Source of the DNA: Oculina patagonica
Taxonomy: Eukaryota
Length of the DNA: 64,000 nucleotides
Assembly (NCBI RefSeq): GCF_052425735.1
Contig: NC_135769.1
Coordinates: forward strand, 24,180,001 to 24,244,000
Reading direction: 5' to 3'
Shown here one piece after another: positions 33,024 through 63,200 of this stretch. Numbering within the stretch: position 1 is the first letter of the stretch; the number at the start of each line of letters is the position of its first letter. Under the pieces are notes generated by a model. It made no database searches. It was not told where the DNA came from and saw nothing but the letters and a program-made list of their open reading frames with translations. The position numbers and the translations under genes are program-made.

Positions 33024-33511
33024 CTTTTTAGCTCATTCTCAAGAATGAGGTATTAGAATCGTACAGATGTTGACGGAAGTTGTTTTGCATGCGTGTGCGT
33101 GTACCAAAATTGTGTGGACGGAAGTTGTAGAACGGAAGTTGTAGAACGGAAGTGATTTTACATGCTACCCCTCCCCCCATAGTAACGTCAAAAATAACTT
33201 CAATGAAGCTCAGATGCAAATGTGAAAAGAAATGAAATCCTTGTATAGGGTAATAAATAAATTTAGATGAAATCACAATTTCGGAACTGTCTACAATGAT
33301 AAGACCCCTCAACATGTCCTCGACCCTGATCCCAATCTGTCTACATCCAAGAGAAAGTATAAGGAGCGATCTAAAAAAATATTCAATGGAATTTTTTTGG
33401 TACGTTTGAAGCAGAGTTGGTTTTGGCTCGTGACGTGACGCAGCTGATGTTCACCCGCACGCGACCCTGCACGCATTTCTGTGCGTGCACAATGAACCAA
33501 AAATTAAGTTA

Positions 33512-34038
33512 CCGTATTTACTCGAATAAGCGCCGCGGCGCTTATTTAATTTTTGGCGCCTCAGGTGCGGCGCTTATTCGAGGGCGGCGCTTATTTGAGG
33601 GCGGCGCTTATTAAAAATTTCGACGCCACCAAGAATCTAATCCTTTACATTAATTGAAATAACGTTTTTTGATTGTCACTATTCGCCTCTTGCTGAAGAA
33701 AGAAGTGGTGCTAGCTGTCCTAGCAAAGTTCACGGCCTTCACAACATTTACAGAACTACGTATTGTAAGAATGTTGGACAGAAAAACTAATGGGCGAGCG
33801 GTAAAACAATCACTTTGAACTGCAAAACATCGCTTTTGATGGAAAGAAATATCCAAGTTTTGTTTTAGAGTTGCTTTGTAGTGCTGTTTTTAGTAAAAAC
33901 GGATTTCCTTGAATAAGCGCCGCATCCGGACTGCGGCGCTTATTCGGGGGCGGCGCTTATAAACTTTTTTGTCCGAAATGCGGCGCTTATTCGAAGGCGG
34001 CGCTTATTCGGGGGCGGCGCTTATTCGAGTAAATACGG
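33512..34038. mobile_element. TA-flanked MITE (CCGTATTTACTCGAATAAGCGCCGC TIR; pogo/mariner-like)
   Basis: 25-bp TIR, TA TSD and internal GCGGCGCTTATT repeats. Removing it restores the Helentron 298-bp repeat unit. Confidence 0.9.
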
Positions 34039-34858
34039 TACGTCAACTCTCTTTTTAGAAATGCACGATCTGCGCACGTCGCCGAAAATGTATCAAATAT
34101 ATATTTTTTGTTATTTACTTTCCTCTTTCTAAGAACCCTCGACATGTTGTCTTCGACCGTCATCCCAATCTCCCCACGTCCAAGTAAAAGGATAAAGAGT
34201 CATCCAAAAATTGACTCATGACGTTACGCAGCTAATGTTCACACGCACGCATTTCTCTACGTCTACAATGAACCAAAAATAAAGACACGTCAACTCTCTT
34301 TGTAATGTAGTAAGGCACGACCCGCACACGCGTCCCTCTTAAATCAATAACTTATCACCTCCCCCCTTAGTAAAAGCCAAAATTAACTTCGATTAAGCGG
34401 AGATACACATGTAAAAAGAAATGAAATGTTTTTATAGCCTAATGATTAGTTTATAAATAAATTAACATGAAAACAGAATTTCTGAAGTTCTAAAAATTGC
34501 AACATGGATCGATAAAGCCGAAAGATTTTCACGTAGGGGACCCTGAACGGGTTCACTTCATACGTGCTGACACGCGCAATCGAGTCCACGAGGTAGACGA
34601 TTGAGGAAGCCATATTGGCAAGACGAAGATTTCCTTTCGTATTGGTAAGTAATCATTGCTTTATTATTGTGCTTGTCCTTTGGAGCTCTTCAACATACAA
34701 CGCACACATCAATCATAGCGGCCAAGATAGTCTCACTAAAACGTTTTTTCGAGCTCCAACGTTTCGATCCAGACTTGAGGCTCGCTCGAACAAGAACTGC
34801 TATTGACAATTTGCAAATACAAAGCACAAAAGAATCTCTCATAAAAAAGTTGCTTGAG

Positions 34859-37800
34859 ATGGCTACCACTCACATTAGATCAATCACAGACAGTGCTATC
34901 AAGTTTATAAAGACGAAGCTGTCCTTGTTGGCTCGTAAGTTTACCTTGCTGTTCTCCAAACCACAGGCAGCAACACAAGTGGCTGATCATGCGTTGAATA
35001 CATCGAAAGATAAAGGCAGCATCGAGAGAAAGACAACCTTTTGCTCACTCAGCAATGAAGTCTCAGTACAGGTACAGTATAAAAATGCAATCTTCAGATC
35101 TCGTTACGATATCTATATTAATTTCTGTCAACAAAACGTAAGGCGAAGAAGGAGTAGAGCAGTGTCAAGAATCCCCACAAGCCAAATAAAGCGTGTTATG
35201 CAAAAGAGTAAAAAAGTGGTAATTACTGTGCGGAAACATGTCCGAAAAGTTGTCCCACAGTCATCAAAACTTCATGCGTACTTAAACAAAAAAACCAGTG
35301 CATACTATAGGTTAAATATTGAATTCTGTGGAATTTCTGATCGTAAGCATAAATCAGCTACAAAGCAAAGGTCTAATCACAATAAAAAACATTATGAATC
35401 TACAAATCATTGCTTCATAAAACAACAGAGAATGTTTTTTGTTAATGTACAAACAAGAACACCAAAACACAAGAACTGTGTTGCCTGTGTTTATACTGAT
35501 GAACATGGTTTAAAGAAATTGCAGTGCTATTGTGTACAAATACTGTGGGTGGCTCATCGCACAATATCATTAAGTGGTGATGTAGAGAAGAATCCTGGGC
35601 CTTCCGCTCAGACGAACATTGACAAAAATGACTCATGTGCCATATCAGTCAATTCAGTTTCATTACTTGAATCCAGATTAGCTGAATTTGGTAGAATTCC
35701 AGTTAATGTATTAGGAGATGGGAACTGTTTTTTCCGTGCGGTGTCATGTCAGCTACACAACACTCCCGACAATCATTTTTATATACGCTGTCTTGGAATT
35801 CAGCATCTTGTGCATCACCCTGAGTTGTATATAGAAAGCAACTTCGAACACTCTTGGCAAAACTATGTCAACAATATGGCAAGACAAGGAACATTGGCAG
35901 ATAATATTATAATTCAAGCTGTTGCAAATTCTCTGAATGTCACAATTAATATCATAGAGTCAAATGTAAATTTTTCTCCCATCACTGTTGTACATCCAGT
36001 TAATACTAATGCAGACACAACAAATATTTATATTGGCCACATACAAGAATATCATTATGTGTCTTCAGTGCTAGCCTTGAACTCTAATACCTCTGAAATG
36101 ACAAGTGAGAATAGATTAATCCAAAAATCAGTTAGTTCACGTGAAGACCAAGTAGAACAGTATCAAGAAACACAATTACCACAAAAGGACCATGGAGATC
36201 TTGTCAATAAAGAAGAAGATAATAGGAAGAGAGCAAATGAATCAGAAACAAACAAAGCAGAAAAACGTAAAGTTTCTAAAAGGGAATACATGCGAAAGAA
36301 ACGGGCAAGCCCAGAGTACAGACAAAGGCAAAATACACCAAGAACCAAGAGGTTAAAATTATCAGAAACAGACAAAGCTGAAAAGCGGAAAGCTTCTAAT
36401 AGAGAAAACATGCAGAAGAAACGGGAAAATCCAGAGTACAGACTAAGAGAAAATAGACGAAGAACAGTTGGTTTAGAATGTGATAGTAATATAGTTCTCA
36501 GAGAAAAAATTGTAAATTGTAAAACCTCTGAAAGAGAATTCATACAAACAGAACATGGGGAAGCTGTTAACAAAGTGAAAGATAACCACAAGAGACTAAA
36601 ATTATCTGCTGAAAAGCGGAAAACTTCTAATAGAGAAAACATGCGGAAGAAACGGGAAAATCCAGAGTATAGACAAAGAGAAAATAGACGAAGAACAGTA
36701 AGTTTAGAATGTGATAGTAATATAGTTCTCAGAGAAAAAAATGAAAATTGTAAAACCTCTAAAAGAAAATTTATAGGAAAAAAACATCGGGAAACTGTTA
36801 ACAAAGGGGAGATAACCACAAGAGACTAAAATTATCAGAGGCAGACAAGACTGAAAAGCGCAGACCTTCTAAAATAGAACACATGCAAAAGAAACGAAAA
36901 AAATTGCAACAAATGAAAATACAGAAAGAGACCAATAATCTAAGTACAATAATACCAGAACCTTGCGAAAATTATGCAAATGCTTGCAAATCCATGATAA
37001 GCAATTTTCATGACAATATAAGTTGTGGTCCTGAGTACATATGTACCTGCTGTGATCAATTGTGGTACAAATCTTCAGTTAGAAAATGCAATGCAACCAA
37101 TTATAGCAAATGTCAACAAAAGATTGTCCAGTCTTGTATTACTGGAGTAAAAAGTATCAACAATACTGAATGGATCTGTAATACCTGTCATTTAAATATA
37201 AATCAGGGTAAATTACCGACATGTTCAAAGGCAAATGGCATGGGTTTCCCTGATAAACCAGAAGTTCTTGATTTGACCTCACTAGAAGAAAGGCTTGTAT
37301 CACCACGCATTCCATTCATGCAAATCCGTGAACTTCCAAGAGGTGGTCAGCTGTCAATTCATGGAAATGTAGTTAATGTACCAAGTGATGTCAATTCAAC
37401 TGTGCACGCCCTTCCTAGACATTTCAGTGAGTCACAAACTATCCCAATAAAACTAAAGAGGCGACTAAGCTATAAACACCACTATCAGTTTCAAAACATA
37501 AGACCAAAAAAAGTTTTACAGGCAGCTAAATATCTTGTTAGTACTAGTGAGTTATTTAAAAGTGAAGGCATACAGGTTCAAGATACATGGCAAAACAGTG
37601 CCAGCACACAACCTGAGGAAAATGAAGAATGGCATGAGTTCCAATATAATGTTGAAAATGATTGTGAGAAAGACGTTCAACATAGTGCAAATAATTGTAA
37701 CGACGACAATTTAGGTTGTCTAAATTCTGAAACTATTGATAGTGATGATGACGATGACAATTGGTGTGAAGTTGTTGAACGTCCGTCGGGAGTGACAGAC

Positions 37801-38244
37801 ACCTTGTTACAAGAACCAGAAATAACAGAAAATGGTGATAACATCATAAGCTTTGCACCAGGTGAGGGAAACAAACCTTTGGGTATATTTATGGATAAAG
37901 ATTCAGAATTTCTATCATTTCCCACACTATTCTGTGGAAAACGTAGAGTAGATCACACTAAAAGGAAGGTCCCTGTTTCATATAGCACAGTAGCAAAGTG
38001 GGAATTGAGATGTCAAGACAGAAGAGCAGCACAATCAGTCCCTAATTTGTTTTATAAACTAAAAAAGCTACAAATTAAGCAAATTCAAGACACTGCTTGC
38101 ATTTCTCTTAGGAAATGTAAAACCAAAGGTAAGAAGTACACTGCCGGTGACTTAAAGTCAGAGGATCATGTAAATAAGCTGATACATCTTGATGAAGGTT
38201 TCAGAGTATTAAAAAATTTAAGAGGAAGCCCAGCATATTTTCAA
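34859..38244 (+). pseudogene. Helentron polyprotein N-terminal part: 2A-like motif, OTU protease, basic repeats, Cys-rich region, Rep N-terminus
   Basis: GDVEKNPGP, GDGNCFFRAVS..HYVS (OTU), CTCC/WICNTC, LEERLVSPRIPFMQIRELPRGGQ and LRGSPAYF. A 1-bp deletion near 36809 joins the 720-aa and 475-aa ORFs, as seen by comparing internal repeat copies. Confidence 0.88.
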
Positions 38245-40246
38245 CAAGCAGCTATTTCAAAAAGAAATAGTGTTTCGTTTCCTGATTGCGGAAGGGTAAG
38301 AATAGTGTAACACTTAAGGAGAGGTGGGTTTGGGGTTTACTTTAATTTGGAGAAGGTCCTAGTGTATGTTAAATTTGCCGAATTTATGCACGAGTGCAGA
38401 ATGAAAAGAAGAACTTCATATTCAGTAGTAACTTAAATTCTCATTTTACACCTACTGTCGATTTTATGTAAAGGAGACATAAACTACGTCCTGCTGCAGT
38501 TTGGCTTTCAAGAGTTCAAGTAACACATAAATATTTCTCTTTATAGAAATAGCATATGTCTTTATCTCCAAATTAAGTTAAGTGAAGGGAGCTTGCCTTT
38601 ATCGTTATTACTCATCCAGTGGAAATTAAAATGATTTTTTTTATTTCTGCAGAACACTTTTTTGCTTAAAAATGGCACCCGATAGCATAACTTTGGATGT
38701 TACATGAATGGAAAAATAACTTACAGAAAATATTGAGCGCTCTTCAAAATACATTCTTCCCAAGAAAGAAAGAATAAAGATATTCCTATCAATGTGGGGA
38801 AACATGAAACCACAAGAGTAAAATGCAAGATCAGAGTAATGCAATTAATTTAAATGGTTTATTTTTTGAAACAAACAATGGGTTGTTCCAGAAAAAATCC
38901 ACACCCCCCCGACGGATGGGATTCTGGAAATTCTCGCGGGAGGGGGGGTAAAGGGCTCTGGAAATCCAGGCGGGAGGGGGGGTTGAACCTCAAAAAGTCT
39001 TCTGCAGGGGTCATTTCAACCGATAATTCGAGCGCTTCGAACGTTTAGTTCGGTGACACTTCAGCGCCATCAGATCTTGAAAAAGTCGATTATATTTTTG
39101 TTCATATATTTCTCACCTGACATAAATGATAATCTAAGTTCCTTCACAGGTCTTTTTATAGCAGAAAACGTTGAAGCAAGATACAAAATTAAAGAGAACC
39201 CGTCACAAGATCTCACAACGTTGTTGCAACGAAGATCGTGAAACGCCTGACACATTTCTACTCGCCTGACACATTTCTACTCGTACCCAGACCCAGCGCG
39301 CCACCGTTGTGTAATTTCACGTTAGCTCCGTTGAAATCTTGGTTGTTTGGTGTCATGATAATAAAAAAGAAAAGAAAAACAACTGATTTACTTTCAAACC
39401 TTCGCACTTTGTATTTTTAGTTTTTTTTTTGTTATCTTGGTCTACAATTATCAGCCCAGTCTGCCTACTTCTCGGCTTTTTAAACCTTCAGCACAGATTG
39501 CCCAGCGTCAGCATCTTTGTAACAAGGTTTGCGAAACGTAAATGGAATAAATTTTTTTGCGCTAAATAATTTCTCTCAAGTTTGCTTTGCTTATCATTAT
39601 CCCCTTCCGAGACCTCTGCAGCCGCAGTAGCTTCTGCTTTAACTGTTGCTTATTACTAACGGTCACTGGTCATTAAGTGTTAACCTTTGCCAGAAAAAAA
39701 TGAACACATAATTTTAACGACAAAGACGAGTTTATTTGCAAATATATGGTGTAACAACTATGTATTTAGTGTAACAATAATAAAAAAACAGTCGTTCCTT
39801 ATTATTTTACCCCTATATAATAAATACTATGCTTCTAATATCTTTGTGGGTACGAAATAACGTTGATAATTTGTTCAATTTTGTACTGTAAACAACTTTA
39901 AATCAAAACTTTTAAACAAAAACAACATTTTCGTTAGTAAATAACTGTAACCAAGATACACTTTCTTTCTGTGCTCGCGCGGGCTTACAAAATTATCGTG
40001 TAAAATTATTTCTGACGCAAACTTAGAAAGATATCGAGCTTAAAAATTCATAAACTGGACATCTTTGCATCAAGGTCTTAACTCCTGAACAAAAACAACA
40101 CTTAAATCACCAGCAAATAACTGTAGCCATAATACACTTTCTTGTTGTAATCGCGCTGGCTTTGTAGATTACTGTGTGAAATTATTTCTGACGCGAACTA
40201 AGAAAGATCGATATTAAAAAACACGAACTGTCATTAAAAAATGTCT

Positions 40247-41302
40247 TTAGTCCCAATCATCATCGAACACCTGTCTGGCAATGTCGGCTTCTTCGCCGTT
40301 ATCAATTGCTACTTCGTCAGAGAAGTCTCCGAGCTCCTCTTCAATTTCACTGCTTGCTTGAGCTGCTCGTTTTCCCTTTACCGAAGAAAGCGCCCGGGTT
40401 CGCGAAGTGGTCAGTCCAGCAACCGATTTTCGTAAACGATCCTGTGCCAATTTGAGCTCAGTTAACGAATTCTTCAGTTCTTCTTCTTTCTGCTTGATAC
40501 TCATCTTTATTTGTGGCGAGAGTCCTCGAGCGCGCAGCGCAGTTATTTCCTCGTTTATTGATTTTATTTCCTGGTCTTGCGCTCGTAATAAATTTAAGTT
40601 CTTGCTGACAGTTTTTGCTGATAAAGCCAACTTGTGCCCCTGAATTTCCCGCGACAGAGATTTTGCCAACTCTTCTTCTCGCTCGGCATCTCGGATGCAC
40701 AGTTCGGTGGCATGTATTCGCCAGTGGGTGTCAATGATCCCATGTAGTTCTTGCTTAGAATATCTGGAAAAGCTAGGCGATGAGCACAACTCTTCCGCTT
40801 TCTCGTTCCAGAACCTATAATAATCTTGTCTTCGGTCTGTGGCCTTTTCTATGGTCGATTCTGGGTACAAATACACTCGCCCACGTGCTGCGCTGTAGTT
40901 TGCAGCTGAAGTCGGAGTCGTTCCAGAGGCCTGAAAGTACTTGAAGACGGGCTGTTGACGCAAACGCTTTGGTTTCGGGGTACTTAGTTCGCTCGAAGCC
41001 CTTTTCGCCACCAACTCTGTTTCCTGAAGGTACAGGTTCAGTGAATCATCGTCATCGTGAACGAGGCATTTTCCTAGTGGGACAAAAGTTTCTTGTCCAG
41101 ATGCTACAGGAATACGTGCACACTCTTGCTTTCCAACGGGCTTTGTAAATATGTAATTAAGGGGAAGGAAATCGTTCACAACTTGCAGTACATTGTTTCT
41201 TGTAGCAGCAAGATCGATTTCCTTTTGCTCGTCAGAAATAAAAACTTGACATTTCAGCTCTTCCCCGACAAACACGTTGACTTCGATATGAGATTTCGCC
41301 AT
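40247..41302 (-). CDS. 351-aa accessory protein of the Zator-like element (compact N-terminal domain, helical W-rich domain, coiled coil, acidic tail)
   Basis: Intact intronless ORF from ATG 41302, divergent from the transposase. Heptad-rich C-terminal half and a KPKRLR NLS-like motif. Confidence 0.75.
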   Translation of the reverse strand: MAKSHIEVNVFVGEELKCQVFISDEQKEIDLAATRNNVLQVVNDFLPLNYIFTKPVGKQECARIPVASGQETFVPLGKCLVHDDDDSLNLYLQETELVAKRASSELSTPKPKRLRQQPVFKYFQASGTTPTSAANYSAARGRVYLYPESTIEKATDRRQDYYRFWNEKAEELCSSPSFSRYSKQELHGIIDTHWRIHATELCIRDAEREEELAKSLSREIQGHKLALSAKTVSKNLNLLRAQDQEIKSINEEITALRARGLSPQIKMSIKQKEEELKNSLTELKLAQDRLRKSVAGLTTSRTRALSSVKGKRAAQASSEIEEELGDFSDEVAIDNGEEADIARQVFDDDWD

Positions 41303-42103
41303 GTTCTTTCTCGTAAAATTATTAAAACGCAAAGGTCCGGAAGTGAAAACAAGTAATCCGAGGGTGGTAAAGTGCTGTGTTGTCAAGTCTACTACGACTT
41401 GACCAGCTTTTGACAACTTTATTTTAAACGACCAATTAAAAAGTGAGAAATTATGGTAAAAGAATCTGTCACTTTTTACAAAGCGGCTATGATGGCGGCT
41501 ATGTGTGAAGTCTATTTACAGAGCTTTCAATGGTTCAATGCCCAGATTTTTGTAGTGTCTTTTTTTCGCTTCCTTTTCTACAAAAAGCTGAACACGAATG
41601 TCTTATGAATGCATCAGCGCGCCAGTATTTGATAAACAGTTTATTTAACACAGTTGGATTAACAATAAACAATCACGCAAATACAGTATACTGTAAGTTG
41701 TGATTAAATATGCTCTTTTATTTCCGGTCACTAAATACGTTATACGGAACTGCAAATTAAAGAATTTGTGTTAAAAGAGAGATATGTATATTCTACTTGA
41801 AAAAACGAAAAGGAGACTACCTCGAAAGCTAATTCAAGTAAGGCAAATGGATTTTGTTTATAGCGGTGCTTTGCCGAGTTGTCTGTAGCCATTCTAGTAT
41901 CAGCATGTGACTCAAGGTGACAATAAAACTTGTGAAATTCAAATTTGATGGTTCACGTGCGCACTACGTGGTCGTATGTTCTTAATTCAAGCTAATTGAA
42001 AAGGATCATTTTGTTTTGATTCGCTTAGTCAAGCTACAGTAGGTCTATAATCGTATCGCAACGAATTTTGAGTAGTCAATATTGTAGGTGATCTGTTAGC
42101 GAC

Positions 42104-45100
42104 ATGTCTTCGCGAATTGCTTCGAAAACGACTGTTGTACCATCAGTCATAAGCACTTTGAGTGTACCACAACTGATGTTTCTGGGAAAAACAGAACGCA
42201 CAACAGATCCATCTTTGATGAGAGAAATGCCTCCACTGAACACGTGCCAAAGAGTTCGCTCGGAGTTATATAAAATGCAAGAGGGTGCATCGGATGAAGT
42301 TCAACAACAGTACAAGCCAGTTGCGAGATGGCAGAATTTTGGCACGTTTTCCAGGGATGACATTGCTTATTTCATCCAGCAGTATCAAATTAAGGCTACT
42401 AAAAGGGAAGTGCGAGATGAAGAAGTGTGGTTTGGTCAACTGTTGACCCTGTCCTCTTCAAAAGCGAACAAATCATTCGTATCTAATGTAAGGAGCTTTA
42501 TGGAACACATTTGGATGGCTTCGCCAAATTCTACCGTATTTTCAAGCGGAGTTACAGCAGAACAGCTCAGTAAATTGTGTTGTGATCGTTGGCTATCGTG
42601 TGACATAATCGATGGTGTCTTTGCAATGATTAACCAAAGAAATGACACTCACTATTTTGCAGTTTGTTCTGAAGCATTAATCCACTCAGTGCGAGCTAAA
42701 CAGCGATTGTGTAGTACTATTACTAACAAACTATCACAATTGAAATACATTCATTTCGCTCTAAACGTAAAACGAATGAATGATGGAAAGGTTTTGGTGG
42801 GAAATGGCAATCATTGGACCTACTTCGCTTTTAGTACTTCACTTGATGAACTCTATTACGGCGATAGTCTTGGTTGGAAGTTGCCTTCAAATCTTCTTAC
42901 AGTTATGAAACCAGTGTTTGAAGCACTTTATGCGTTCAGCGGAAAATCCTACACCAAGCCTAGTTATCCGGTCCTTATGCATCAGCCAGGGGCAGCATTC
43001 GGACAGCACAAGTGTGGTGGTTCTTGCTTCAAAGCTTTTCCACTTCAGACATGTGGCTCCGCATGTGGATTGACACCCATTTTCATGGCGGCAATAGCTG
43101 GAAGCAGGGAAGAACTGTGGAAGCATATGATTAAAGAAAGAAATCCTAATCAAAACGTATTGAAAGATGTGAGAAAAATTACGGAAGTAACACGAAATTC
43201 ACCGGTACTAAGAGCAGCTATTATGGGTTGGTTTGTTCGCTCTGCAGTAACGCTTGATGCGTATCTCATCCCTTCGTTTTCTATCTGTAACACAGCGGCG
43301 GACAGTAACACAGCAAGTCCATCAGCTTCTAGCAAAGCACGTCCGTCAGCTACTAGCACAGCAAGTCCGTCAGCCACTAGCAAAGCAAGTCCGTCAGCTA
43401 CTAGCAAAGCAAGTCCGTCAGCTACTAGCAAAGCAAGTCCGTCAGCTACTAGCACAGCAAGTCCGTCAGCTACTAGCACAGCAAGTCCGTCAGCTACTAG
43501 CAAAGCAAGTCCGTCAGCTACTAGCAAAGCAAGTCCGTCAGCTACTAACGAGGCAAGTCCGTCAGCTACTAGCAAAGCAAGTCCGTCAGCCACTAGCAAA
43601 GCAAGTCCGTCAGCTACTAGCACAGCAAGTCCGTCAGCTACTAGCACAGCAAGTCCGTCAGCTACTAGCACAGCAAGTCCGTCAGCTACTAGCAAAGCAA
43701 GTCCGTCAGCTACTAGCACAGCAAGTCCGTCAGCTACTAGCAAAGCAAGTCCGTCAGCTACTAGCGAAGCAAGTCCGTCAGCTACTAGCACAGCAAGTCC
43801 GTCAGCTACTAGCAAAGCAAATCCGTCAGCCACTAGCAAAGCAAGTCCGTCAGCTACTAGCAAAGCAAGTCCGTCAGCTACTAGCAAAGCAAGTCCGTCA
43901 GCTACTAGCACAGCAAGTCCGTCAGCTACTAGCACAGCAAGTCCGTCAGCTACTAGCAAAGCAAGTCCGTCAGCTACTAGCAAAGCAAGTCCGTCAGCTA
44001 CTAGCAAAGCAAGTCCGTCAGCTACTAGCACAGCAAGTCCGTCAGCTACTAGCACAGCAAGTCCGTCAGCTACTAGCAAAGCAAGTCCGTCAGCTACTAG
44101 CAAAGCAAGTCCGTCAGCTACTAGCGAAGCAAGTCCGTCAGCTACTAGCACAGCAAGTCCGTCAGCTACTAGCAAAGCAAGTCCGTCAGCCACTAGCAAA
44201 GCAAGTCCGTCAGCTACTAGCAAAGCAAGTCCGTCAGCTACTAGCAAAGCAAGTCCGTCAGCTACTAGCACAGCAAGTCCGTCAGCTACTAGCACAGCAA
44301 GTCCGTCAGCTACTAGCAAAGCAAGTCCGTCAGCTACTAGCAAAGCAAGTCCGTCAGCTACTAACGAGGCAAGTCCGTCAGCTACTAGCACAGCAAGTCC
44401 GTCAGCTACTAGCAAAGCAAGTCCGTCAGCCACTAGCAAAGCAAGTCCGTCAGCTACTAGCACAGCAAGTCCGTCAGCTACTAGCACAGCAAGTCCGTCA
44501 GCTACTAGCACAGCAAGTCCGTCAGCTACTAGCAAAGCAAGTCCGTCAGCTACTAGCACAGCAAGTCCGTCAGCTACTAGCACAGCAAGTCCGTCAGCTA
44601 CTAGCACAGCAAGTCCGTCAGCTACTAGCAAAGCAAGTCCGTCAGCTACTAGCAAAGCAAGTCCGTCAGCTACTAGCAAAGCAAGTCCGTCAGCTACTAG
44701 CAAAGCAAGTCCGTCAGCTACTAGCACAGCAAGTCCGTCAGCTACTAGCACAGCAAGTCCGTCAGCTACTAGCACAGCAAGTCCGTCAGCTACTAGCACA
44801 GCAAGTCCGTCAGCTACTAGCACAGCAAGTCCGTCAGCTACTAGCAAACCAAATCCGTCAGCTACTAGCACAGCAAGTCCGTCAGCTACTAGCACATCAA
44901 GTCCGTCAGCAACTAGCACAGCAAGTCCGTCAGCTACTAGCAAACCAAGTCCGTCAGCTACTAGCAAACCAAGTCCGTCAGCTACTAGCACAGCAAAATA
45001 TACATCTGGCGAAACGTTACTTCCATTTCCCGGCGTTTCTAAAAGCTTTTACAAGCAGCAAGGAGAAATTTGGGCTAAAAATAATTCGCGCAATTTAGGG

Positions 45101-48505: not shown

Positions 48506-48900
48506 GCGTTACTGTTGCTTTGGCCGAGGGGTTAATAACCTTAAAGCGGGCAAAAACATATTAATTAGTTGAAACAAACAGGTAGTACAATGGAACCTTA
48601 ACATAACGAAAGGCCGGAATAGAAAATTGTGTAAGCTTTTACGAGGTCTGCTGTATTGAAGTTATTTTTTATATGTTCCTCTAACTGAGAAGAAGAATAT
48701 CGTTCGTTACCGCAGAAGACTTTGTTACACAGAGGTTCGTTATAGAGTTGAGGTTCCGCTGTGTTACAGACTAGAGAAATCTTAGTTTCGTTGTAAATCC
48801 CGCATTTCCCATTTTATCTAGTTGTCAAAACACCACTGCAACCAGTTTCTTCAAGATGTTTATTTTTAAAGTTTATGGAAAAATTTACATCGAACTTAAT

Positions 48901-49102
48901 AGGGGCCTTGCCAGGGTGGTCCCCGAGTCGCTTCTGAATTTCAAAATGCCCGGTGTCGGCTGTTTCATCGGTCATTATAGGCCTTTTTGTCACTTGTCGG
49001 AATTTGGCAAGAAAGGTTATTACTTGTCGCAGTTTCATTTCATGTGCTGTCGCTACTTTTTGGGCCATGTCACTTGTCGGAATTTACCCTGGCATGGCCT
49101 CT
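48901..49102. mobile_element. Small MITE inside the Zator-like element
   Basis: AGGGGCCTTGCCAGGGT / ACCCTGGCATGGCCTCT termini, flanked by TAAT. Confidence 0.55.
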
Positions 49103-51070: not shown

Positions 51071-51760
51071 CCGTGCGAGCAAACACGAGATACGCCAAGT
51101 CATCCCGTTTTTCTTTGCGCTTGTAAACACTGGTTGGTGGAAATTTACTTCCGTTTTAGAATAATATTAAACGCTAGGAGAGCTTTCTCTAGTTTTCTTA
51201 CAATACGTATACATCGCTTTAGTCAAACTCTCTTGGTCAAACTTAAAACCATTGCAGTCGTCAGATATTTCTGTTTGCAACGAATCTAAATTTTTTTGGT
51301 CATGCTGAGGAATATATTTCCGATATTTGAAGAACATGACTGTTTTTACGAAATTAATTGCCATCGGTCATACGTATTTACTTTGTGGTTACGACCGTTC
51401 TTGTGATTGGCTAGCAGCCCCCCGTGCGAGCAAACACGACAAGTCATCCCTTTTTTGTTTGCGCTTGCAAACACTGATTGGTGAAAATTTACTTCCGTTT
51501 CAGAAAATCGCTAGAATGTTTACTTAACAATTAAACGCTACGAGAGCTTTCTCTAGTTTTCTTACAATACATCGCTTTAATCAAACTTAAAACCATTGCA
51601 GTCGTCAGATATTTCTGTTTGCAACGATTCTCAATATTTTTTTATCATGCTGAGAATATCTTTCTGATATTTGAAGAACATGTTTTTACGAAATTAATTG
51701 CCTTCAGTCAAACGTATTTACTTTGTGGTTGCGACCGTTCTTCTGATTGGATAGTAGCCC
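51071..51760 (+). repeat. About 350-bp tandem duplication within the HINE
   Basis: CCGTGCGAGCAAACACGA...GACCGTTCTT.TGATTGG.TAG.AGCCC occurs twice (51071 and 51422). Confidence 0.85.
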
Positions 51761-51826
51761 TCACTGTGTAAATAGTTCACATCGAAGCCAAAATAATACC
51801 GTATCGTTTCTGAGGAAACGAAACAA

Positions 51827-54800
51827 AAATGCAAAAGGGATTTGTTTGCTATGATCCGTCAGCTTGGGAACCCTACATGGTTCTGTTCTTTCTCAGCCGC
51901 AGAAACGAGGTGGACTCATTTGCTCAAAACCCTTGGCAGAATTGTTGAAAAAAAGGACTATTCTGATGATGAAATAAATAACATGACTTGGCAGCAGAAA
52001 TCGAATCTTATCCAGAGTGACCCGGTAACATGCGCAAGAAATTTTGACCACATGGTGCAACTATTTATACATGATGTTCTCAAAAGCGATGTTATGCCAA
52101 TAGGACAAATAGCTGATTATTTTTACCGTGTCGAGTTTCAGCAAAGAGGCAGTCCTCATGTTCATGGTCTATTCTGGGTGAAAGATGCACCACAATATGG
52201 CAAAAGTTCTCATGAGAAGGTTGTCAGTTTCATTGACAGATACGTAACTTGTCAGAAAGCTCATACTAGTGAAATGGAAGATCTTGTCAATCTACAGCTC
52301 CATAGGCATGCTAAGACATGTAAGAAAATGGGACACAAAATTTGCAGGTTTAACTTTCCGTTGCCACCAATGCGACAAACTATTGTTTTGACACCTCTTG
52401 AAGACTATGACACTTTAGACAATGAGAAGCAGAAAAACATTAAAAAACATGCAGAGAATATTAAAGACCAACTTGACAGGATGAAATATGGCGAAGATAT
52501 AACTTTTGATGAATTCCTGGACAAATTAGGATTGACTGAGGAAACTTACATAGTAGCGTTAAGGTACACAATAAACCACAATACTCTATATTTGAAGAGA
52601 CTGCCCTCAGAAATAAGGATTAATAATTACAACACACAATTATTGCAAGCATGGCGGGCAAATATGGACATGCAATACGTCCTAGACCCTTATGCCTGTG
52701 CAACATATATTTTATCTTACATTACAAAAGGCCAGAGAGGCATGAGCCGACTTCTCGAGAAAGCTACGGAAGAAATTAATTCTGGCAGCAAAGATATTGC
52801 CCATAAAGTAAGACACATTGGCAACAAATTCCTGAATGCTGTAGAAATAAGTGCTCAAGAGGCTGCATACTTGGTATTACAAATGCCACTGAGGAGATCT
52901 ACCCGGGACTTTCAGTTTATTAATACTTCACATCCTGATGAAAGGACATTCCTGTTAAAGAAATTAGACAAGATCAAGGAGCTACCAGATAACTCTTCTG
53001 ATATAGAATCTGATAACATTATAAAGCGTTACCAAAGACGACCAAAACAGTTAGAAAATCTTTGTTTGGCTGACTTTGTTGCCTGGTTCAACTGTGTCAG
53101 GGCCAATGAATCAGACGTTCCAACTGTTGATAAATCTGACATAGACCCTGATAATTATTTTATACCAGAAACTCTTTTAGAGGCCAACACTAATGATGAT
53201 GACCCTTATAATGTAGATGGTAATATTTATGAAGATCAAAATGAACCACAAGAGCTCAAAATTAAAGGTGGTATGAAACTTGTAAAGAGAACAAAACCTA
53301 AAATTATCCGGTCAGTCCGATTTCATAAAAGCAAAGATCCCGAAAATCATTATAGAGAGCAGCTTATGCTTTATGCCCCTTGGCGTAATGAGAACACAGA
53401 TTTACTTGGAAATTGTGAAACCTATCAAGAACGCTTCGATCAGGTCAAGGAACAGCTTCTCTGTAACAGACTAAATTATGAATATCAAAGTGATTTGCTG
53501 GATAAAGCAATGGAGCATTTTGACAATGACCATTTTGATGACAATGTTGCTCCAAATGCACAACATATTAATGCCCAAGACAGTGCAAAGAAGCAAAAGC
53601 CAAGCGAATTGTTTGGTTGCTTTGATCCAGGGAATAATAAGCAATATAGCCAGTACGACTTACTTGATGACATAGGCATCTTTCCTAGATGTGATGACCA
53701 GGAAGACCTTCTTGTAAAACACATTTCCAATGAGGAATATCATCAGCTTGTTCGCTCATTGAATGAAAAACAAAGACAGTTTTTTTATCACGTACTACAT
53801 TCAGTAAAGACTAGCGATGACCCTCTCAGACTTTTCTTGTCAGGAGGTGCCGGTGTCGGTAAATCCACAGTGACAAATGCGTTGTATGAAGCACTGATCC
53901 GGTATTTGAATAAGATGGCAGGTGAAAATCCTGATGAGATCAATGTGATTAAAGCAGCTCCAACAGGAAAAGCAGCATTTAACATCAAAGGAAATACATT
54001 GCATGCAGCCTTTAAAATACCTGCCAACAAGGGATTTGAATACTGTGTTCTTGATAGTGACAGACTTAACACAATTAGAGCAAAATTAAGGAAACTCAAA
54101 ATTTTATTCATTGACGAAATTTCAATGGTGGGAACTGGAATGTTCAATTTCCTCAATCTAAGGCTACAACAGATAATGGGAACCAAGGAACCATTCGGAG
54201 GTATATCCGTAATAACTGTTGGGGATCTGTTCCAGTTGAAACCTGTTTTTGACAGATGGATTTTTGAAAACGCAAACACGTGTTATGGAGCTTTGGCAAG
54301 TAACTTGTGGACCGACTTCTTTACCTTATTTGAACTAACAGATATAATGAGGCAGAAAGATGATAGACAGTTTGCAGAGTTACTCAATCGTCTCAGAGAA
54401 GGAACGCATACTGAACTTGACATCGATTGTTTGAAGGAAAGGCTTTTACACATAGCCCCTGGACATAAAAATTACCCCATGGAAACAACCCATTTGTTTA
54501 CCACAAATGCATCAGTAAATGCACACAACGACAGCATGTATGCCAAATCTCAAAATGATAAATGTCAGATAGAGGCAATAGACATTGTGGTTGGAGATAT
54601 TTCTGACGACCTTAAGAAACAAATGAAAGAGAAAATACCAAATGATCCAACAAAAACAATGGGTTTATATTCACCCGCCTCAATAGCCACCAATGCGAAG
54701 TACGATTTAACAACAAATGTTGATGTAACAGATGGTTTAACAAATGGTGCACAATGTGTCATTAAAAACATTGACTATCGCATAGAGAACTCTAGTAGAC

Positions 54801-55903
54801 CTAGTATTATATGGGTATTATTTCCAGATGCTGGCATCGGTAAAAAGCAGCGAAAAGAAAATGCACACTTATACACAAAAGGCATTATAGATAGGACATG
54901 GACACCAATTCTCGAAGTAACAAGGCAATTCAGAATAAACCGGAAAAGCCAAGTACAAATTCTTCGCCGACAATTTCCATTAAGACCAGCAAGTGCAAAA
55001 ACAATTCACCGTTGTCAAGGTGACACTCTAAGTGCAGCAGTTGTCGATTTCCCCACCTCCACTCAAGAACACATGCACTATGTAGGCTTAAGTCGAGTTC
55101 GCAACAGTTCCACTCTACATATTATCAACTTAAATGAACACAAAATCAGGGTCAGTGAGAAGGTTGTAAATGAGATGAATAGACTGAGGACCGAAGCATA
55201 CCTTGTCCCTTTGGTGACACTAAAAACTGTAGACAACTCCTTTACAATTGTATTTCATAACGTTAGATCCTTACATCTTCACATGGATGATGTGCGGAGT
55301 GATTACAACATTCAAAAAGCTGATGTGAACATTTTTGTTGAAACAAGACTTTGCAAATTAGACAAAGATAATACGTACAGCATGAAAGGGTTTACACTTT
55401 GCAGAAATGACTACACTCGATCACCAAGCAGAAGTTGCTATGGATCAGCTGTTTATGTTAAGAACCCATTTCACTTTAGAGAAATGCCCCACCGATGTAA
55501 CATGAATGGAGTAGAAATCACTATAATGGTTACCGACCAACTAATTCCAAACCTGCATGTAGTTGGTATTTACAGATCCGGTTCAAATGTCACTTTGGCA
55601 AACTTTATTGATGCTCTAAATTATCTTCACGACTCAAAATTAACAACTCCTGACATACCGGTTATACTACTTGGCGATTTCAATGTAAACTTACTGGAAA
55701 AGTCATCTGAGCAAACAGCACTAACAAGATGTTTAATAGCAGAGAGAGGTTATACGCAGCTAATTAAACAGTATACTACAGACTATCGCTCGCTAATAGA
55801 TCACATATATACCAATGTTCCGCATCTTGTAGAGTCTTCAGGTGTCTTAGAGTCATACTACAGTGATCATAAACCAGTGTTCATTTCATTGACAACTCGG
55901 TAA
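51827..55903 (+). CDS. Helentron Rep (HUH) - PIF1-like helicase - EEP/APE endonuclease, C-terminal part
   Basis: VEFQQRGSPHVHGLFW (HUH), YILSYITK, GGAGVGKS (Walker A), IDEISM, GDLFQL, TIHRCQG, YVGLSR, and EEP motifs HNVRSL, GDFN, IDHIY, SDH. Confidence 0.95.
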   Translation, partial: KCKRDLFAMIRQLGNPTWFCSFSAAETRWTHLLKTLGRIVEKKDYSDDEINNMTWQQKSNLIQSDPVTCARNFDHMVQLFIHDVLKSDVMPIGQIADYFYRVEFQQRGSPHVHGLFWVKDAPQYGKSSHEKVVSFIDRYVTCQKAHTSEMEDLVNLQLHRHAKTCKKMGHKICRFNFPLPPMRQTIVLTPLEDYDTLDNEKQKNIKKHAENIKDQLDRMKYGEDITFDEFLDKLGLTEETYIVALRYTINHNTLYLKRLPSEIRINNYNTQLLQAWRANMDMQYVLDPYACATYILSYITKGQRGMSRLLEKATEEINSGSKDIAHKVRHIGNKFLNAVEISAQEAAYLVLQMPLRRSTRDFQFINTSHPDERTFLLKKLDKIKELPDNSSDIESDNIIKRYQRRPKQLENLCLADFVAWFNCVRANESDVPTVDKSDIDPDNYFIPETLLEANTNDDDPYNVDGNIYEDQNEPQELKIKGGMKLVKRTKPKIIRSVRFHKSKDPENHYREQLMLYAPWRNENTDLLGNCETYQERFDQVKEQLLCNRLNYEYQSDLLDKAMEHFDNDHFDDNVAPNAQHINAQDSAKKQKPSELFGCFDPGNNKQYSQYDLLDDIGIFPRCDDQEDLLVKHISNEEYHQLVRSLNEKQRQFFYHVLHSVKTSDDPLRLFLSGGAGVGKSTVTNALYEALIRYLNKMAGENPDEINVIKAAPTGKAAFNIKGNTLHAAFKIPANKGFEYCVLDSDRLNTIRAKLRKLKILFIDEISMVGTGMFNFLNLRLQQIMGTKEPFGGISVITVGDLFQLKPVFDRWIFENANTCYGALASNLWTDFFTLFELTDIMRQKDDRQFAELLNRLREGTHTELDIDCLKERLLHIAPGHKNYPMETTHLFTTNASVNAHNDSMYAKSQNDKCQIEAIDIVVGDISDDLKKQMKEKIPNDPTKTMGLYSPASIATNAKYDLTTNVDVTDGLTNGAQCVIKNIDYRIENSSRPSIIWVLFPDAGIGKKQRKENAHLYTKGIIDRTWTPILEVTRQFRINRKSQVQILRRQFPLRPASAKTIHRCQGDTLSAAVVDFPTSTQEHMHYVGLSRVRNSSTLHIINLNEHKIRVSEKVVNEMNRLRTEAYLVPLVTLKTVDNSFTIVFHNVRSLHLHMDDVRSDYNIQKADVNIFVETRLCKLDKDNTYSMKGFTLCRNDYTRSPSRSCYGSAVYVKNPFHFREMPHRCNMNGVEITIMVTDQLIPNLHVVGIYRSGSNVTLANFIDALNYLHDSKLTTPDIPVILLGDFNVNLLEKSSEQTALTRCLIAERGYTQLIKQYTTDYRSLIDHIYTNVPHLVESSGVLESYYSDHKPVFISLTTR

Positions 55904-59050: not shown

Positions 59051-59116
59051 CTTAGCCAAGTCATTTAAAAGTAAGCGCCTTCTTGGAACTTGTGTTTCTA
59101 CACTCAAACTGAATTT

Positions 59117-60262
59117 ATGGCAGCTAGAGGAGCATCGTACACTGAACGTAGTGGAAAACCAGAAGTGAAAGACGTAGAAGGATATATCCACGACGTGTCA
59201 GAATTCCAAATTCCACGTTCTGGAACGGGCAACAGATTCTTCGATTTCACTATACAAGAAAAAGAACAGAACAGACGAGTGTATTGCTTTAGTCCAAACC
59301 AGAGAGAGGGCATCAAGGATAAAGAATCCAACAAATCACCCGTTCGTTTAATGAACGTAACTCCACAAAAACGAAAATGGGTTCCAGATAGCACCGAATA
59401 CCGATTCAACAACTATTCCAAGGTAATGATCGTCCAGAACCTTGCGTTCCCTTGGAAAGATCTACCGAAACAACTTTCCAATGAAACGACGACCATCAGA
59501 CATATTAAAAATGAAACCTTGGATGGACAATACGTGTCACTCACAGCTAAAGTCGTGTTCAAAGGCGCAACCGAAACAGTCTTTTCCAGTGCACAAAACA
59601 AGGATCCCAAGAAGAGTGAACTCATAATCGCGGACACCACTGGAGCAATCCCTGTAACACTCTGGGAAGAAACTATTGACTTAATAGAAACTAACAAGTC
59701 ATACCTTTTTAACAAGGTGAGAGTCTGCTTTTACAACAAGAAATATCTCAGTTTTACAAAGACTAGTACATTTGAACTTCATCAAGATGACATTCAACTC
59801 ACTAAAGAAGTCATGAACGATGTAGAACTTCTTAAACCTAATCAAAACAACCAACTGATCGTTGGACAGATCTTAACAATACATGTAGAGAAATCTTATT
59901 CTTGCATTAATTGTAAGTCAAAGATAACAGTCAAAGAAGATGCCGACGACGACTCTCAATTCACCGAATGCGACGCTTGCAAACAAACGATGTTAACAGA
60001 AAATCTAACGGCCTCGACCACAGCAAACATCACTATTTCCCACGAAGGAAAAAATATAGGACGTTTTTTCTGTTCTGCAAAAGTTCTGAACTCTATGCTT
60101 AAATCTCTCTCGACCACTGTAAATTACAACATCGCACAAACTACAACTAATCTCTCAAAAACCATGATCAAACAAACTCTTCTGTTACTGAAAAAAGTTA
60201 AATTTCAGCTGTCTATGGAAGATAGACTAATATATGCAATGAATACAATTGACGATCCATGA
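59117..60262 (+). CDS. RPA1-like multi-OB-fold ssDNA-binding protein with Zn finger, carried by the Helentron
   Basis: OB-fold motifs (VSLTAKVV, IIADTTGAIPVTLWEE) and a CINC...CDAC zinc ribbon. Lies inside the Helentron termini. Confidence 0.75.
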   Translation: MAARGASYTERSGKPEVKDVEGYIHDVSEFQIPRSGTGNRFFDFTIQEKEQNRRVYCFSPNQREGIKDKESNKSPVRLMNVTPQKRKWVPDSTEYRFNNYSKVMIVQNLAFPWKDLPKQLSNETTTIRHIKNETLDGQYVSLTAKVVFKGATETVFSSAQNKDPKKSELIIADTTGAIPVTLWEETIDLIETNKSYLFNKVRVCFYNKKYLSFTKTSTFELHQDDIQLTKEVMNDVELLKPNQNNQLIVGQILTIHVEKSYSCINCKSKITVKEDADDDSQFTECDACKQTMLTENLTASTTANITISHEGKNIGRFFCSAKVLNSMLKSLSTTVNYNIAQTTTNLSKTMIKQTLLLLKKVKFQLSMEDRLIYAMNTIDDP

Positions 60263-63200
60263 ACAATGTCACACATTTTTTTGGTATGCCTACACACGAC
60301 TAAAACATTTGTCCTTGTTGTTGTTGTTTTTTTTTTCTAAAAAAAGTACCACGAAACTTAAAAGAGGATAGCAAACGGGATGTTGCGATCACGTTTCACG
60401 CACAAATTTCAACCACATTCACCCGTCACGAATACTTGAAAGAGCACAGATTCACGAACTGAATCACGTTTCTTTTCTAGCTATTTAATTTCACTCATCA
60501 CACTCTAACTTTTCCCCTATTGTCACCCGTCACGGACTAATTTTTGCCCTTTCACGTGTCACGCACAACCCCTTTGCTACCCTCTTAAAACAAACAAAAA
60601 GTCAAAAAAGATTATGATACCACTCTAGCTTTGCAAAACACCATGCTCGTAAACAAACAATGGTTAGAGAAAAAATCTCTCCATCGTCCGTCGACAAATG
60701 AAATAATTTTCCATAAAGGACAAAATATAGCTCGCTTGTTTGGCTTTGCAACTTACAACGATTAAATTGATCAGCATAAACTATTACTTGAAGGAAATTA
60801 TATGACCATTGTATGTTTACACAATAACATATATTTCAACAAACACGATTCTCCTCTAGCTGCCATATGCATATCGCAATTATCATGAAATCATACTTTA
60901 GTTGAGCATGAACATCCCCACTTGTACGTGATCACGCCACTACCGGACGCGAAACGCCTGGACACATTCCTTTACACTCACAAACAGAGACAACCACTTT
61001 TTGGCCTAAAATGTGTAAATTACAATTTGCCAGCGTATCGAAAAACAAACCTGCCCATGACATTTGATTTTAAAGCTAGTTGCTTATCAAACCAAAAAAG
61101 TAACCGACATGTCCTCACATTCAAAAATCACTTGAACCTAAAGTTTAAATCTCACAAACAATCTTAAAATGTCTTCGCTCTAAGAAAAACTAGATTCAAA
61201 CTTATGTCGGTACAAAATTAATTTACTCGCCACATAAAACACTCAGTAACGTCCACACACCTTTTTTCGTTTCACAAACCACATGACCAATCTCGTTGAC
61301 GATTCCCAAATCAACTGTAACCCGTATCTCTCTTCTTCGAACCCCTACGAACATTGTCTGTTACACATTTTACGCAAAAACTGGTTATCCTTATTTAGCA
61401 CGTCCTCGTTACCCTAATTTTCCGTCCCCAAATCCCAGGCAACACCTTCCCACATCCGAGGTCCAAAGCACGCGTACTCAAGCCCCACCCAGCCCTCCTG
61501 AAGTATGACTTCATAATAATTGGCAACTTCAATCATTTTACAACCAAGATAAAAACTACGTTGTTTTCCTTTATGCTTTGAAAGTTTACATTGTAATGTT
61601 TAAATTCAAATCTACATAAACTGATGCCTCGATATACGGCTCTAGCTGTAAACAAAGATTATGATTACCACTGTTAGTTTCCACAATGTCATGCTTGTAA
61701 ACAAACAACAATGTTCCTAATATTAGTAGCCTCGACACTTCAATAGATTTCTAACAATAATGAAACAAAGTTCGTTTTCCTTTCTTTCTGTTCTAAAACT
61801 TAAACTGTATTGCAATGTTGTGTTCATTAAAGTTATGTTTTTTGGCAAACACTGACTTTTGTCTCTCTAACAAAAACATCATGCTTAGATAACACTACAC
61901 TTCCGAACAACCCAACTTCGTTACGCCAAAACACTCATACTCCCACTCCAACTAGAAATCCCAGGTAATTCTCAAAAATGTCAAGCAAGTTAAGAGTTTC
62001 CTAATAACAACTTACAAAAATACAGTTTGACCACTCTACTCTACCACAAAACAATTTGAATTCCCCCTTGCACATTTTACGACCTTTTGAAATTAGCACC
62101 TGCTCATACATTATAACACTACACAAAGATTTCATTTCCTTAAAACACACGTATCCAACCTTCCTTTTGACTTTACTAGGGAAGCCTAGACGACTTTATT
62201 TTCAATATACCCTATACCCCGGACAAAAGCTACCCAGCTATTACCAGAATGAGCTGGCCCAAAGCGCCCTTTGATTAGTGTAGTGTTTGAACTACACTCA
62301 TGCGGTAGATTGTTTGTGAGGTGAAAAGTGCTACGGGGATAACGCTAGCTGTAAACAATTCCAAGCATGCCATTTATTTCAAAAGATCGGCTTTCAAATA
62401 GCCTGCGTCATGTTGCAGCCAGACGTATCACCAAATCCTTGATATACTGCCAGGCTGCTTTCAAGAGATCGTGTGTATTAAATTATAAGCAAGATTTAAA
62501 TCCTCGCGTTTCCAGGTATGAATTGCAAGACTTACTTGTCTTTTGCCGAACAATTGAGGAAAAAAACCCTGAGAAACAGCAAATACATGTCAAAAAGCAA
62601 GTTTCTTTGATTTGTCAAACATGCACGAAAGCGAATGTTTCCAAATTTATATTTAAGCAACATGACCTTTTCCCGACATTAACAATCCGTCACGCAAATT
62701 GAATATTTCTCAAGTATTTCCTTCCATGAATGAAACTTTTGTTTGAGAGCGGAATATTTTCTCAGAAGAAAGTTTTTAGACCGTCGCCTCGGACATTATA
62801 ACACTGAAGTGTGCCGTGTGAAATCTTCGTAGTGCAAAAAACAATACTTTCACTGCTGATTCCATCTGTTGAAAAAAAAAACATTTACCGCAGTTTTCTG
62901 TTTTTTAACGTGGGGACAGTGGCTTCATTGTGAACTAAGGAACGGTTATATAGGTTTGGCTTCGTCAGTTGGAAGAGCTTAATCAAGCTTAAGGGCCGAA
63001 AATTTCGAAGTCCACTTTGACTGGTTTGTCAACTTTTGTTATTCAACTGAAGAGAAATAGTTAACAATTATTCCATGAGCCCGCGTTGGATACGAGGTGG
63101 TAAATATTGAATGAAACATACGAGGAAAGCGAGCCAGAGAGTTTTCTTTCCAAGATTTTCCTCGAACAATCCCCTCTAAAGTCGTCTAAATATCCTGGAA

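Follow-up and report, generated by a model that had tools for sequence, protein, structure and literature searches.

A Helentron interrupted by an antisense HINE, itself interrupted by a TIR DNA transposon, in a coral genome

The window, i.e., the whole stretch of 64,000 nucleotides that was analysed, holds a nested stack of ordinary transposon insertions of known kinds in a coral genome, and is a clean case of such nesting, not a new type of system. All the long ORFs of the nest are open. Its features (positions in the window) are the following:

33025–62274, plus strand: outer Helentron, ~15.7 kb once the nested HINE and TIR element are subtracted
33512–34038, no strand assigned: TA-flanked MITE in the 5′ non-coding region of the Helentron, with 27-bp perfect TIRs and TA at 33510–33511 and 34039–34040
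34667–36829, plus strand: ORF of an OTU cysteine protease (Pfam OTU, E 5e-9)
36883–38244, plus strand: Rep/helicase/endonuclease ORF, N-terminal 454 codons, with a DUF6570 zinc-finger-like region
38245–38879, minus strand: 3′ part of the HINE; read on the minus strand, it has the subTIR AGGAAACGAAACA, the hairpin CTATTTC-TTTTT-GAAATAG and terminal CTGCTTG, as well as one of the two AAT copies that flank the TIR element
38880–50058, plus strand: TIR DNA transposon of 11,179 bp, with TIRs GGGTTGTTCCAG.. at 38880–38920 and 50018–50058
40247–41416, minus strand: second ORF of the TIR element
42104–48505, plus strand as the element: intact ORF of 2133 aa in the TIR element
50059–51826, minus strand: 5′ part of the HINE; read on the minus strand, TT plus the subTIR GTTTCGTTTCC.., a 5′ hairpin with GAAACGA and two central repeats
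51827–55903, plus strand: Rep/helicase/endonuclease ORF, C-terminal 1358 codons (second half of Rep, PIF1 helicase, AP-type endonuclease)
59090–60262, plus strand: OB-fold (Ssb/RPA-like) ORF of the Helentron (Pfam Ssb-like_OB, weak, E 1e-3)
62275–64000, plus strand: third Helentron-type non-autonomous (HINE-type) element, adjoining the 3′ end of the Helentron and extending beyond the window

The outer element is an autonomous-type Helentron, with OTU, DUF6570, Helitron_like_N, PIF1 helicase and C-terminal Exo_endo_phos domains and an OB-fold ORF. According to Pfam, Rep and a PIF1-type helicase belong to a single ORF (Helitron_like_N, E 3e-23; PIF1, E 2e-29), with HVH and YILSY motifs in the translated second half of Rep and Exo_endo_phos (E 6e-8) at residues 1200–1343 of the C-terminal piece, and a GDVEKNPGP (2A-like) motif stands immediately ahead of the OTU domain. 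At the 5′ end, a run of five T (33025–33029) precedes the 5′ subTIR AGCTCATTCT (33030–33039), which pairs with 33042–33049 into a hairpin; its complement, the 3′ subTIR, lies at 62246–62255, and these are the sole two matches in 64 kb (0.07 expected). This 10-bp subTIR is shorter than the 12–15 bp described for mites, and the 3′ hairpin (62260–62273, 5-bp stem CAAAG/CTTTG) is weak (z −0.7). The nearest relative in the same genome reaches 74% at the nucleotide level, and neither a close second copy nor an empty site of the Helentron itself was found there.

A sequence-only reading of the locus had proposed a three-level nest spanning 33025–62279. Its 5′ end stands, as a multi-copy family begins at the identical base (TTTTT plus the subTIR), the T5 run being common to all family copies. 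In contrast, the 3′ end has to be moved to ~62274, because another Helentron-type element begins at 62275: this neighbour starts with TTAGTGTAGTG in nine other loci, and bases 62275–62279 thus belong to it. It opens with TT and the palindromic subTIR AGTGTAGT..ACTACACT, and is itself interrupted at 63064–63846. Likewise, the three layers are present but the count falls short, since the 5′ region also harbours a TA-flanked MITE and the HINE-type element adjoins the 3′ end. The MITE is absent from related non-autonomous copies, and locus L030 shows its empty site (..AAAAT TA CGTCAAC..).

The Rep domain is interrupted near profile position 100 of 191. Positions 38242–38244 read CAA (Q) and 51827 onward reads AAA TGC AAA AGG GAT (KCKRD), both being codon starts in their respective ORFs, and the N-terminal frame runs on for 22 codons inside the HINE to a stop at 38310. 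Cutting out 38245–51826 restores the Rep frame, as had been proposed, ..GSPAYFQ joining KCKRDLFAMI.., and the equivalents of this Q and K are neighbouring codons, without gap, in all 14 uninterrupted paralogous Helentrons (L014–L027, 80–87% amino acid identity). Moreover, the empty junction was recovered letter for letter from a public coral run (X2), in which a contig matching 37682–38244 goes on with AAATGCAAAAGGGATTTGTTTGCTATGATC, i.e., window positions 51827–51856. In contigs of runs X1 and X3, the match ends exactly at 38244, followed by 674 and 2,835 further letters, respectively; the uninterrupted sequence of X1–X3 may represent another copy and not the same locus. None of the longest contigs listed, out of ~2,000, bridges 38244/38245, so that the evidence for the occupied junction is the assembly. 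Since CAA stands on both sides, the boundaries of the HINE can be shifted by up to 3 nt, which leaves the empty site unchanged. The five T ahead of the HINE were considered as part of the element and rejected, because the empty site already has five T.

As its 454 N-terminal codons are split from the HUH/Tyr, helicase and endonuclease parts, the window copy would be unable to make its transposase. The idea that a non-autonomous element disabled an autonomous one is thus retained for the window copy, but other coral samples have near-identical copies that lack the interruption, which suggests recent insertion events, perhaps still segregating. Each of the three layers looks young.

The insert in Rep is 2.4 kb long (without the TIR element), lies on the minus strand, antisense to the Helentron, and has the HINE termini that the sequence-only reading had recognized there, ending at identical bases in 11 other family copies. 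TGTTTCGTTTCCT at 38271–38283 and its complement at 51813–51825 are the only two matches in the window (0.16 expected) and constitute a 13-bp subTIR pair, which starts 2 nt inside the 5′ end and 39 nt inside the 3′ end. The 3′ hairpin (7-bp stem, T5 loop, 7 nt from the terminus; z −2.0) is conserved among copies, the two central repeats of the 5′ part (~350 bp each) are 80% alike, and no ORF of at least 120 aa belongs to the HINE itself. The insert is a HINE under the definition of Thomas et al. 2014 (PMC4067079), which asks for subTIRs of 12–15 bp, one lying 2–4 nt inside the 5′ terminus and the other tens of nt inside the 3′ terminus. Genome-wide, exact 28-nt 5′ termini reveal at least 182 intact 5′ ends, versus 0 for the control, and the copies differ from their consensus by 0.5–0.8% (0.8% for the window HINE). 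Head-to-tail junctions occur at loci L004 and L012, within the T5 loop of the hairpin. HINE and outer Helentron belong to different families, as already suspected from their subTIRs, because these are wholly unlike, whereas members of one family share 11 or more identical subTIR bases under the published rule (PMC4067079); BLAST finds no similarity between the two elements either. Among the 100 listed of the 182 HINE 5′ termini, none lies at the distance from a Helentron copy that is expected for an autonomous partner.

On the strand of the HINE, the target is a T run: the empty site has T5, the occupied site T5 plus T2, and all 11 other copies (10 independent) have ttt ahead of the 5′ end and tt past the 3′ end. 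The earlier description of an A/T run with no TSD therefore holds for the T5 target and for the lack of a detectable duplication, but an absent TSD is here indistinguishable from a TT duplication, a known ambiguity of Helentrons.

The HINE is interrupted in turn by the TIR element, whose TIRs match at 41/42 positions and which is flanked by a 3-bp TSD, AAT (38877–38879 and 50059–50061). A single AAT at the matching place in uninterrupted HINE copies represents the empty site, which is also seen in reads, read contigs show loose ends at 38879, and all other HINE copies examined are devoid of the insert. The TSD is genuine, and AAT or ATT duplications are found on both sides of 10/10 independent non-autonomous relatives. 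The coding DNA of the element is single-copy in the 529-Mb assembly. In its 2133-aa ORF, the N-terminal region bears a weak likeness to CE-clan proteases, and a 24-bp tandem repeat (~43150–45000), a DDE core, SAP and a Tudor-like tail are also present.

Calling this element Zator-like, as the sequence-only reading did, is plausible on the basis of the 3-bp duplication and the predicted mariner-like DDE fold only. There is a substantial, though not prevailing, chance that it is not a Zator but a member of a different DDE superfamily, named or not, in which duplications are likewise 3 bp long. In favour of Zator, this superfamily is related to IS630-Tc1-mariner (PMC7386202), and a TSD of 3 bp is reported for it (PMC12905397). 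The predicted model of the DDE core (pLDDT 79.5, pTM 0.80) has an RNase H-like fold with conserved D, D and E, the last two separated by 43 residues; Mos1 and Sleeping Beauty fill the nine best Foldseek matches (E 9e-5 to 5e-3), the best ones being Mos1, and the longest structural alignments in VIA-align are those with Mos1 and Metnase (160–178 residues). In a language-model search, the nearest clusters are those of PF07592/DDE_3 (PF07592 being presumably the former Transposase_36) and fungal unnamed ones (0.85–0.86), to be taken as a lead only. Against Zator, Pfam reveals no transposase domain in the inner protein (also scanned in pieces) or in 34 relatives, only SAP, OTU and weak noise; the PF07592 HMM has no match across the whole genome, and no sequence link to Zator/TP36 appears in the protein, the 34 relatives or the genome. 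In VIA-align, retroviral integrases and IstA (Z 9.8–8.9) are level with Mos1 (Z 8.6). Finally, the target is AWT, versus TWA for amphioxus Zator-1 (PMC12905397). A search of PDB sequences with the inner protein returned nothing, and a large HMM search delineated a big family of 2,022 clusters, among the best 150 of which no link to annotated bacterial transposases was seen. The two ORFs, termini reading GG..TGTT and a duplication of 3 bp had also suggested PIF/Harbinger, which was rejected because Pfam would have detected DDE_Tnp_4.

Altogether, the best explanation of the locus, which we hold to be quite probable, is a succession of three insertions. An autonomous-type Helentron (33025 to ~62274, plus strand), encoding an OTU protease, a Rep/PIF1-helicase/AP-endonuclease and an OB-fold protein, would have come first; a 2.4-kb HINE of an unrelated family would then have integrated antisense, presumably by a rolling-circle mechanism, into a five-T run (on the HINE strand) within the Rep domain; later, an 11.2-kb cut-and-paste DDE element would have entered the HINE, duplicating AAT. 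This order is favoured because the coding DNA of the TIR element is single-copy. The HINE might instead have gained the TIR element elsewhere, the resulting 13.6-kb composite then moving into the Helentron as one unit, since long cargo is possible for Helitron-type elements and the composite has both its HINE termini intact. Yet rolling-circle transposition leaves the donor in place, and the single copy of the TIR coding DNA means that the assembly holds no donor composite; the insert is also absent from every other HINE copy examined and loose ends occur at 38879, which makes such a joint move improbable.

Two further readings concern the insert itself. That the 2.4-kb element would be a TIR-type MITE producing a 2-bp TT duplication, and not a rolling-circle element, could be argued from its 13-bp inverted repeat and from the TT found at the 5′ start and directly past the 3′ end in every copy, all the more so as target modification by Helentrons is acknowledged as unresolved (PMC4067079). 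Its ends are asymmetric, however, the inverted repeats lying 2 nt from one and 26 nt from the other, and the 3′ hairpin, the head-to-tail junctions in its T5 loop and the central repeats, all published HINE/DINE-1 features, together with a 5′ architecture shared with the adjacent coding Helentron, leave the MITE reading very improbable. Least probable of all, to the point of being barely credible, is an assembly artefact in the form of a repeat-induced chimeric join at the HINE: the family is high-copy, no listed contig crosses 38244/38245 and three runs have the uninterrupted form, but a misjoin would not put complete HINE termini at a T5 run with base-exact restoration of the ORF on removal, nor would it be expected to create the matching AAT of the TIR element.

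The locus provides base-exact boundaries, targets and empty sites for three coral transposon families, among which a very young HINE family and a TIR element that is intact, autonomous and single-copy and has numerous short derivatives, all of use for repeat annotation and as insertion markers. The known workings of such elements are unchanged by this case. A joint reading, which we offer as doubtful, is that T runs (at ends, in 3′ hairpin loops and in coding sequence) might be preferred landing sites for other Helentron families, so that rival rolling-circle families in the coral would inactivate one another and accumulate as arrays; separately, ~150 MITE-like derivatives might have their live source in the single-copy TIR element of 11 kb, which might also stand for an unnamed mariner-like lineage of DDE transposons with fused protease, SAP and Tudor-like modules.

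Compared with known systems, the inner element has TIRs a few tens of bp long and duplicates 3 bp centred on A/T, as do amphioxus Zator-1 (PMC12905397) and its superfamily (PMC7386202), and its predicted catalytic fold may resemble that of Tc1/mariner, as in that superfamily. It differs in targeting AWT, not TWA, and in its 2133-aa protein, which carries protease-like, repeat, SAP and Tudor-like modules and has no detectable TP36/PF07592 sequence similarity. The outer element resembles OTU-carrying animal Helentrons, including cnidarian ones (Thomas et al. 2014; Erven et al. 2022, PMC9741609), in its Rep/PIF1 helicase, C-terminal AP endonuclease, OTU protease and RPA-like ORF, but the window copy is interrupted, is the sole member of its subfamily in the assembly, and has a subTIR of only 10 bp and a weak 3′ hairpin. 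Oyster HINEs with satellite-like repeats (PMC7492417) are also non-autonomous Helentrons of a marine invertebrate with internal tandem repeats and many dispersed copies, whereas the coral HINE has only two ~350-bp internal repeats. With respect to HINE/DINE-1 (Thomas et al. 2014, PMC4067079), the coral HINE differs by its host (coral versus arthropod) and by the lack of a same-subTIR autonomous partner among the listed termini; its 5′ subTIR is not a palindrome in itself but, like that of DINE-1, folds into a hairpin together with a short repeat next to it. The likeness extends to the 13-bp subTIR pair, with 2 nt between the 5′ one and the terminus, the short palindrome past the 3′ subTIR, integration into T runs without clear duplication, central tandem repeats, a noncoding and high-copy nature, and head-to-tail junctions.

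The locus (G+C ~38%; eukaryotic) is an ordinary nesting of transposons of known kinds, and this nesting looks recent. The sequence-only reading had described three levels, i.e., an autonomous-type Helentron on the plus strand, split by a 2.4-kb minus-strand HINE, which itself carries a Zator-like element, found here to be an 11,179-bp transposon with terminal inverted repeats (TIRs). Both the observation and its interpretation were largely right, except for the right limit of the Helentron and for the name Zator given to the innermost element, which is unproven. The four open frames of the outer element form the gene set of a Helentron, and a MITE adds a further insertion upstream of them.

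Open frames of the outer Helentron and MITE in its 5' region
33512-34038: MITE, TA-flanked, 527 bp, perfect 27-bp TIRs (CCGTATTTACTCGAATAAGCGCCGC..), in the Helentron 5' non-coding region
34667-36829, plus strand: OTU protease open frame
36883-38310, plus strand: DUF6570 open frame
51842-55903, plus strand: 1353-aa open frame with the second half of Helitron_like_N, PIF1 helicase and Exo_endo_phos endonuclease
59090-60262, plus strand: OB-fold open frame (weak match)

OTU-bearing Helentrons were previously described from cnidarians (PMC4067079; PMC9741609). Directly ahead of the OTU domain, in the same open frame, lies a GDVEKNPGP motif (2A-like, ribosome-skipping type; ~35540-35602). A 23-nt inverted repeat (22/23 matched; begins ATGGCAGCTAGAGGAG) has one arm at the start of the OB-fold frame (59116-59138) and the other 1.7 kb further downstream, on the other strand (60845-60867); the two arms may be the starts of two paralogous genes in convergent orientation. 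The empty site of the MITE is visible in related copies, the TA being duplicated, and its interior holds several copies of the motif GCGGCGCTTATTCGAG in both orientations. At 33025, the Helentron begins with TTTTT, and AGCTCATTCT comes next; the identical base is the start, in every copy read and always with different flanks, of a family of non-autonomous elements (394 candidates), which is 92-93% identical to the first 490 bp of the Helentron and 99% among its own copies. This family (L029-L037; window 33025-33512) is very young and, over the 1.7 kb that was read, has nothing in common with the 3' part of the Helentron; at one locus (L037), two units lie head to tail, 927 bp apart. Elsewhere in the window, the complement of the Helentron 5' 10-mer is found at a single place (62246-62255), the 3' hairpin is weak, and no other copy of the last 400 bp was found in the genome (529-Mb assembly), nor any close second copy of the whole element (nearest: 74% at the nucleotide level). 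We place the 3' end at ~62274 because a third, non-autonomous family of Helentron type adjoins it (62275-64000), so that the limit first proposed (62279) lay 5 bases too far. This third family begins with a T run (TT) and a palindromic subTIR (AGTGTAGT..ACTACACT) and recurs at nine other loci with unrelated, T-rich flanks; relative to copies L040-L047, its member in the window is interrupted by a ~783-bp extra insert (63064-63846).

That the empty junction restores the Rep frame was borne out in two ways. The codon CAA closes at 38244 and AAA TGC AAA AGG GAT opens at 51827, and in all 14 fetched Helentron paralogs (14/14) the counterparts of this Q and this K are encoded by neighbouring codons. 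Moreover, the public sequencing runs containing this stretch are coral samples, and in one of them (X2) a 1,304-letter contig matches 37682-38244, then continues with 30 letters identical to 51827-51856; in contigs from X1 and X3, the match also breaks at 38244 and the contig runs on. Therefore, near-identical (~99%) uninterrupted Helentron sequence is present in other coral samples, at the same locus or as another copy. The occupied junction is bridged by none of the longest contigs listed, out of ~2,000. Across the runs X1-X3 and X19, the unique part of the Helentron is present for organism A, for organism B and in a coral metagenome, and absent from organism C; that of the inner element occurs in X1 and X2 only, and the HINE and the short TIR derivatives in 4/4.

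On the minus strand, the HINE opens with TT GTTTCGTTTCC TCA GAAACGA, in which the subTIR folds with a repeat beside it (z -3.4); at the other end, the complement of the subTIR is followed by a 7-bp hairpin, whose loop is T5, and finally by CTGCTTG. Across the genome, its 28-nt 5' terminus has 182 exact matches versus 0 for the control, and copies lie 0.5-0.8% from their own consensus. The interior holds two ~350-bp central repeats; neither a long ORF nor similarity to the outer Helentron was found in it. Under the family rule for Helentrons (at least 11 identical subTIR bases; PMC4067079), the two elements belong to different families, as proposed. An autonomous partner, whose coding part TGTTTCGTTTCCT would be expected to flank, was not found among the Helentron copies and HINE 5' termini compared in the genome. 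The insert had been described as lacking a target-site duplication: the T-run target stands, with ttt preceding and tt following every independent copy, but a TT duplication fits equally well. Indeed, on the HINE's strand the empty site has five T and the occupied site five plus two, so that the element either contributes two T or duplicates TT, an ambiguity also described for Helentrons (PMC4067079). At two loci (L004, L012), one HINE breaks off within the T5 loop of the hairpin at its 3' end, and the next copy's 5' end starts there, head to tail; these junction sequences suggest insertion into the hairpin, the loop itself being a putative target, in which case TTGAAATAGCTGCTTG would follow the downstream copy's 3' end.

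The inner element is delimited (38880-50058) by TIRs of 41 nt (the repeat as detected is 42 nt long, with 41/42 positions matched), and an AAT flanks it at each end. HINE copies devoid of it were looked for and found: the halves 38245-38879 and 50062-51826 are directly contiguous in at least eight other copies, and a single AAT stands at the site in uninterrupted copies and in reads. Candidates for short derivatives of it (0.9-1.5 kb) number ~150, and each of the ten whose full sequence was read (10/10) is flanked at both ends by AAT or ATT; the 3-bp duplication and the AWT target are therefore real. In rolling-circle transposition, the donor stays in place, so that a second copy of the composite would be expected had the HINE already carried the TIR element. 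None exists in the assembly, where the coding DNA of the TIR element is single-copy (other matches are fragments, ≤83% identity), which favours insertion of the HINE into the Helentron first and of the TIR element afterwards.

The 2133-aa ORF of the inner element is intact and has relatives in corals, an octocoral and a mussel; its core has ~2,000 cluster-level relatives, among which neither a name nor a transposase Pfam domain was found. Four relatives (alignment A2) bear an OTU protease domain, in place of which the N-terminal region of the window's protein is of another kind, with a weak resemblance to a CE-clan protease. The domain model of the core (pLDDT 79.5, pTM 0.80) adopts an RNase H-like fold, with conserved D, D and E residues on the expected elements. 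In VIA-align, Mos1 and Metnase (Z 8.6) give the longest alignments and rank on a par with integrases and IstA (Z 9.8-8.9), and a language-model search gives a weak pointer to PF07592/DDE_3 and fungal clusters. The Zator label is reasonable but unproven: the nine best Foldseek matches of the domain model are Mos1 and Sleeping Beauty, and Zator elements are related to Tc1/mariner (PMC7386202), but the PF07592 HMM has no match in the genome. As for amphioxus Zator-1 (PMC12905397), a 3-bp duplication is common to both elements, whereas the target sequence differs, AWT for the inner element versus TAA/TTA for Zator-1.
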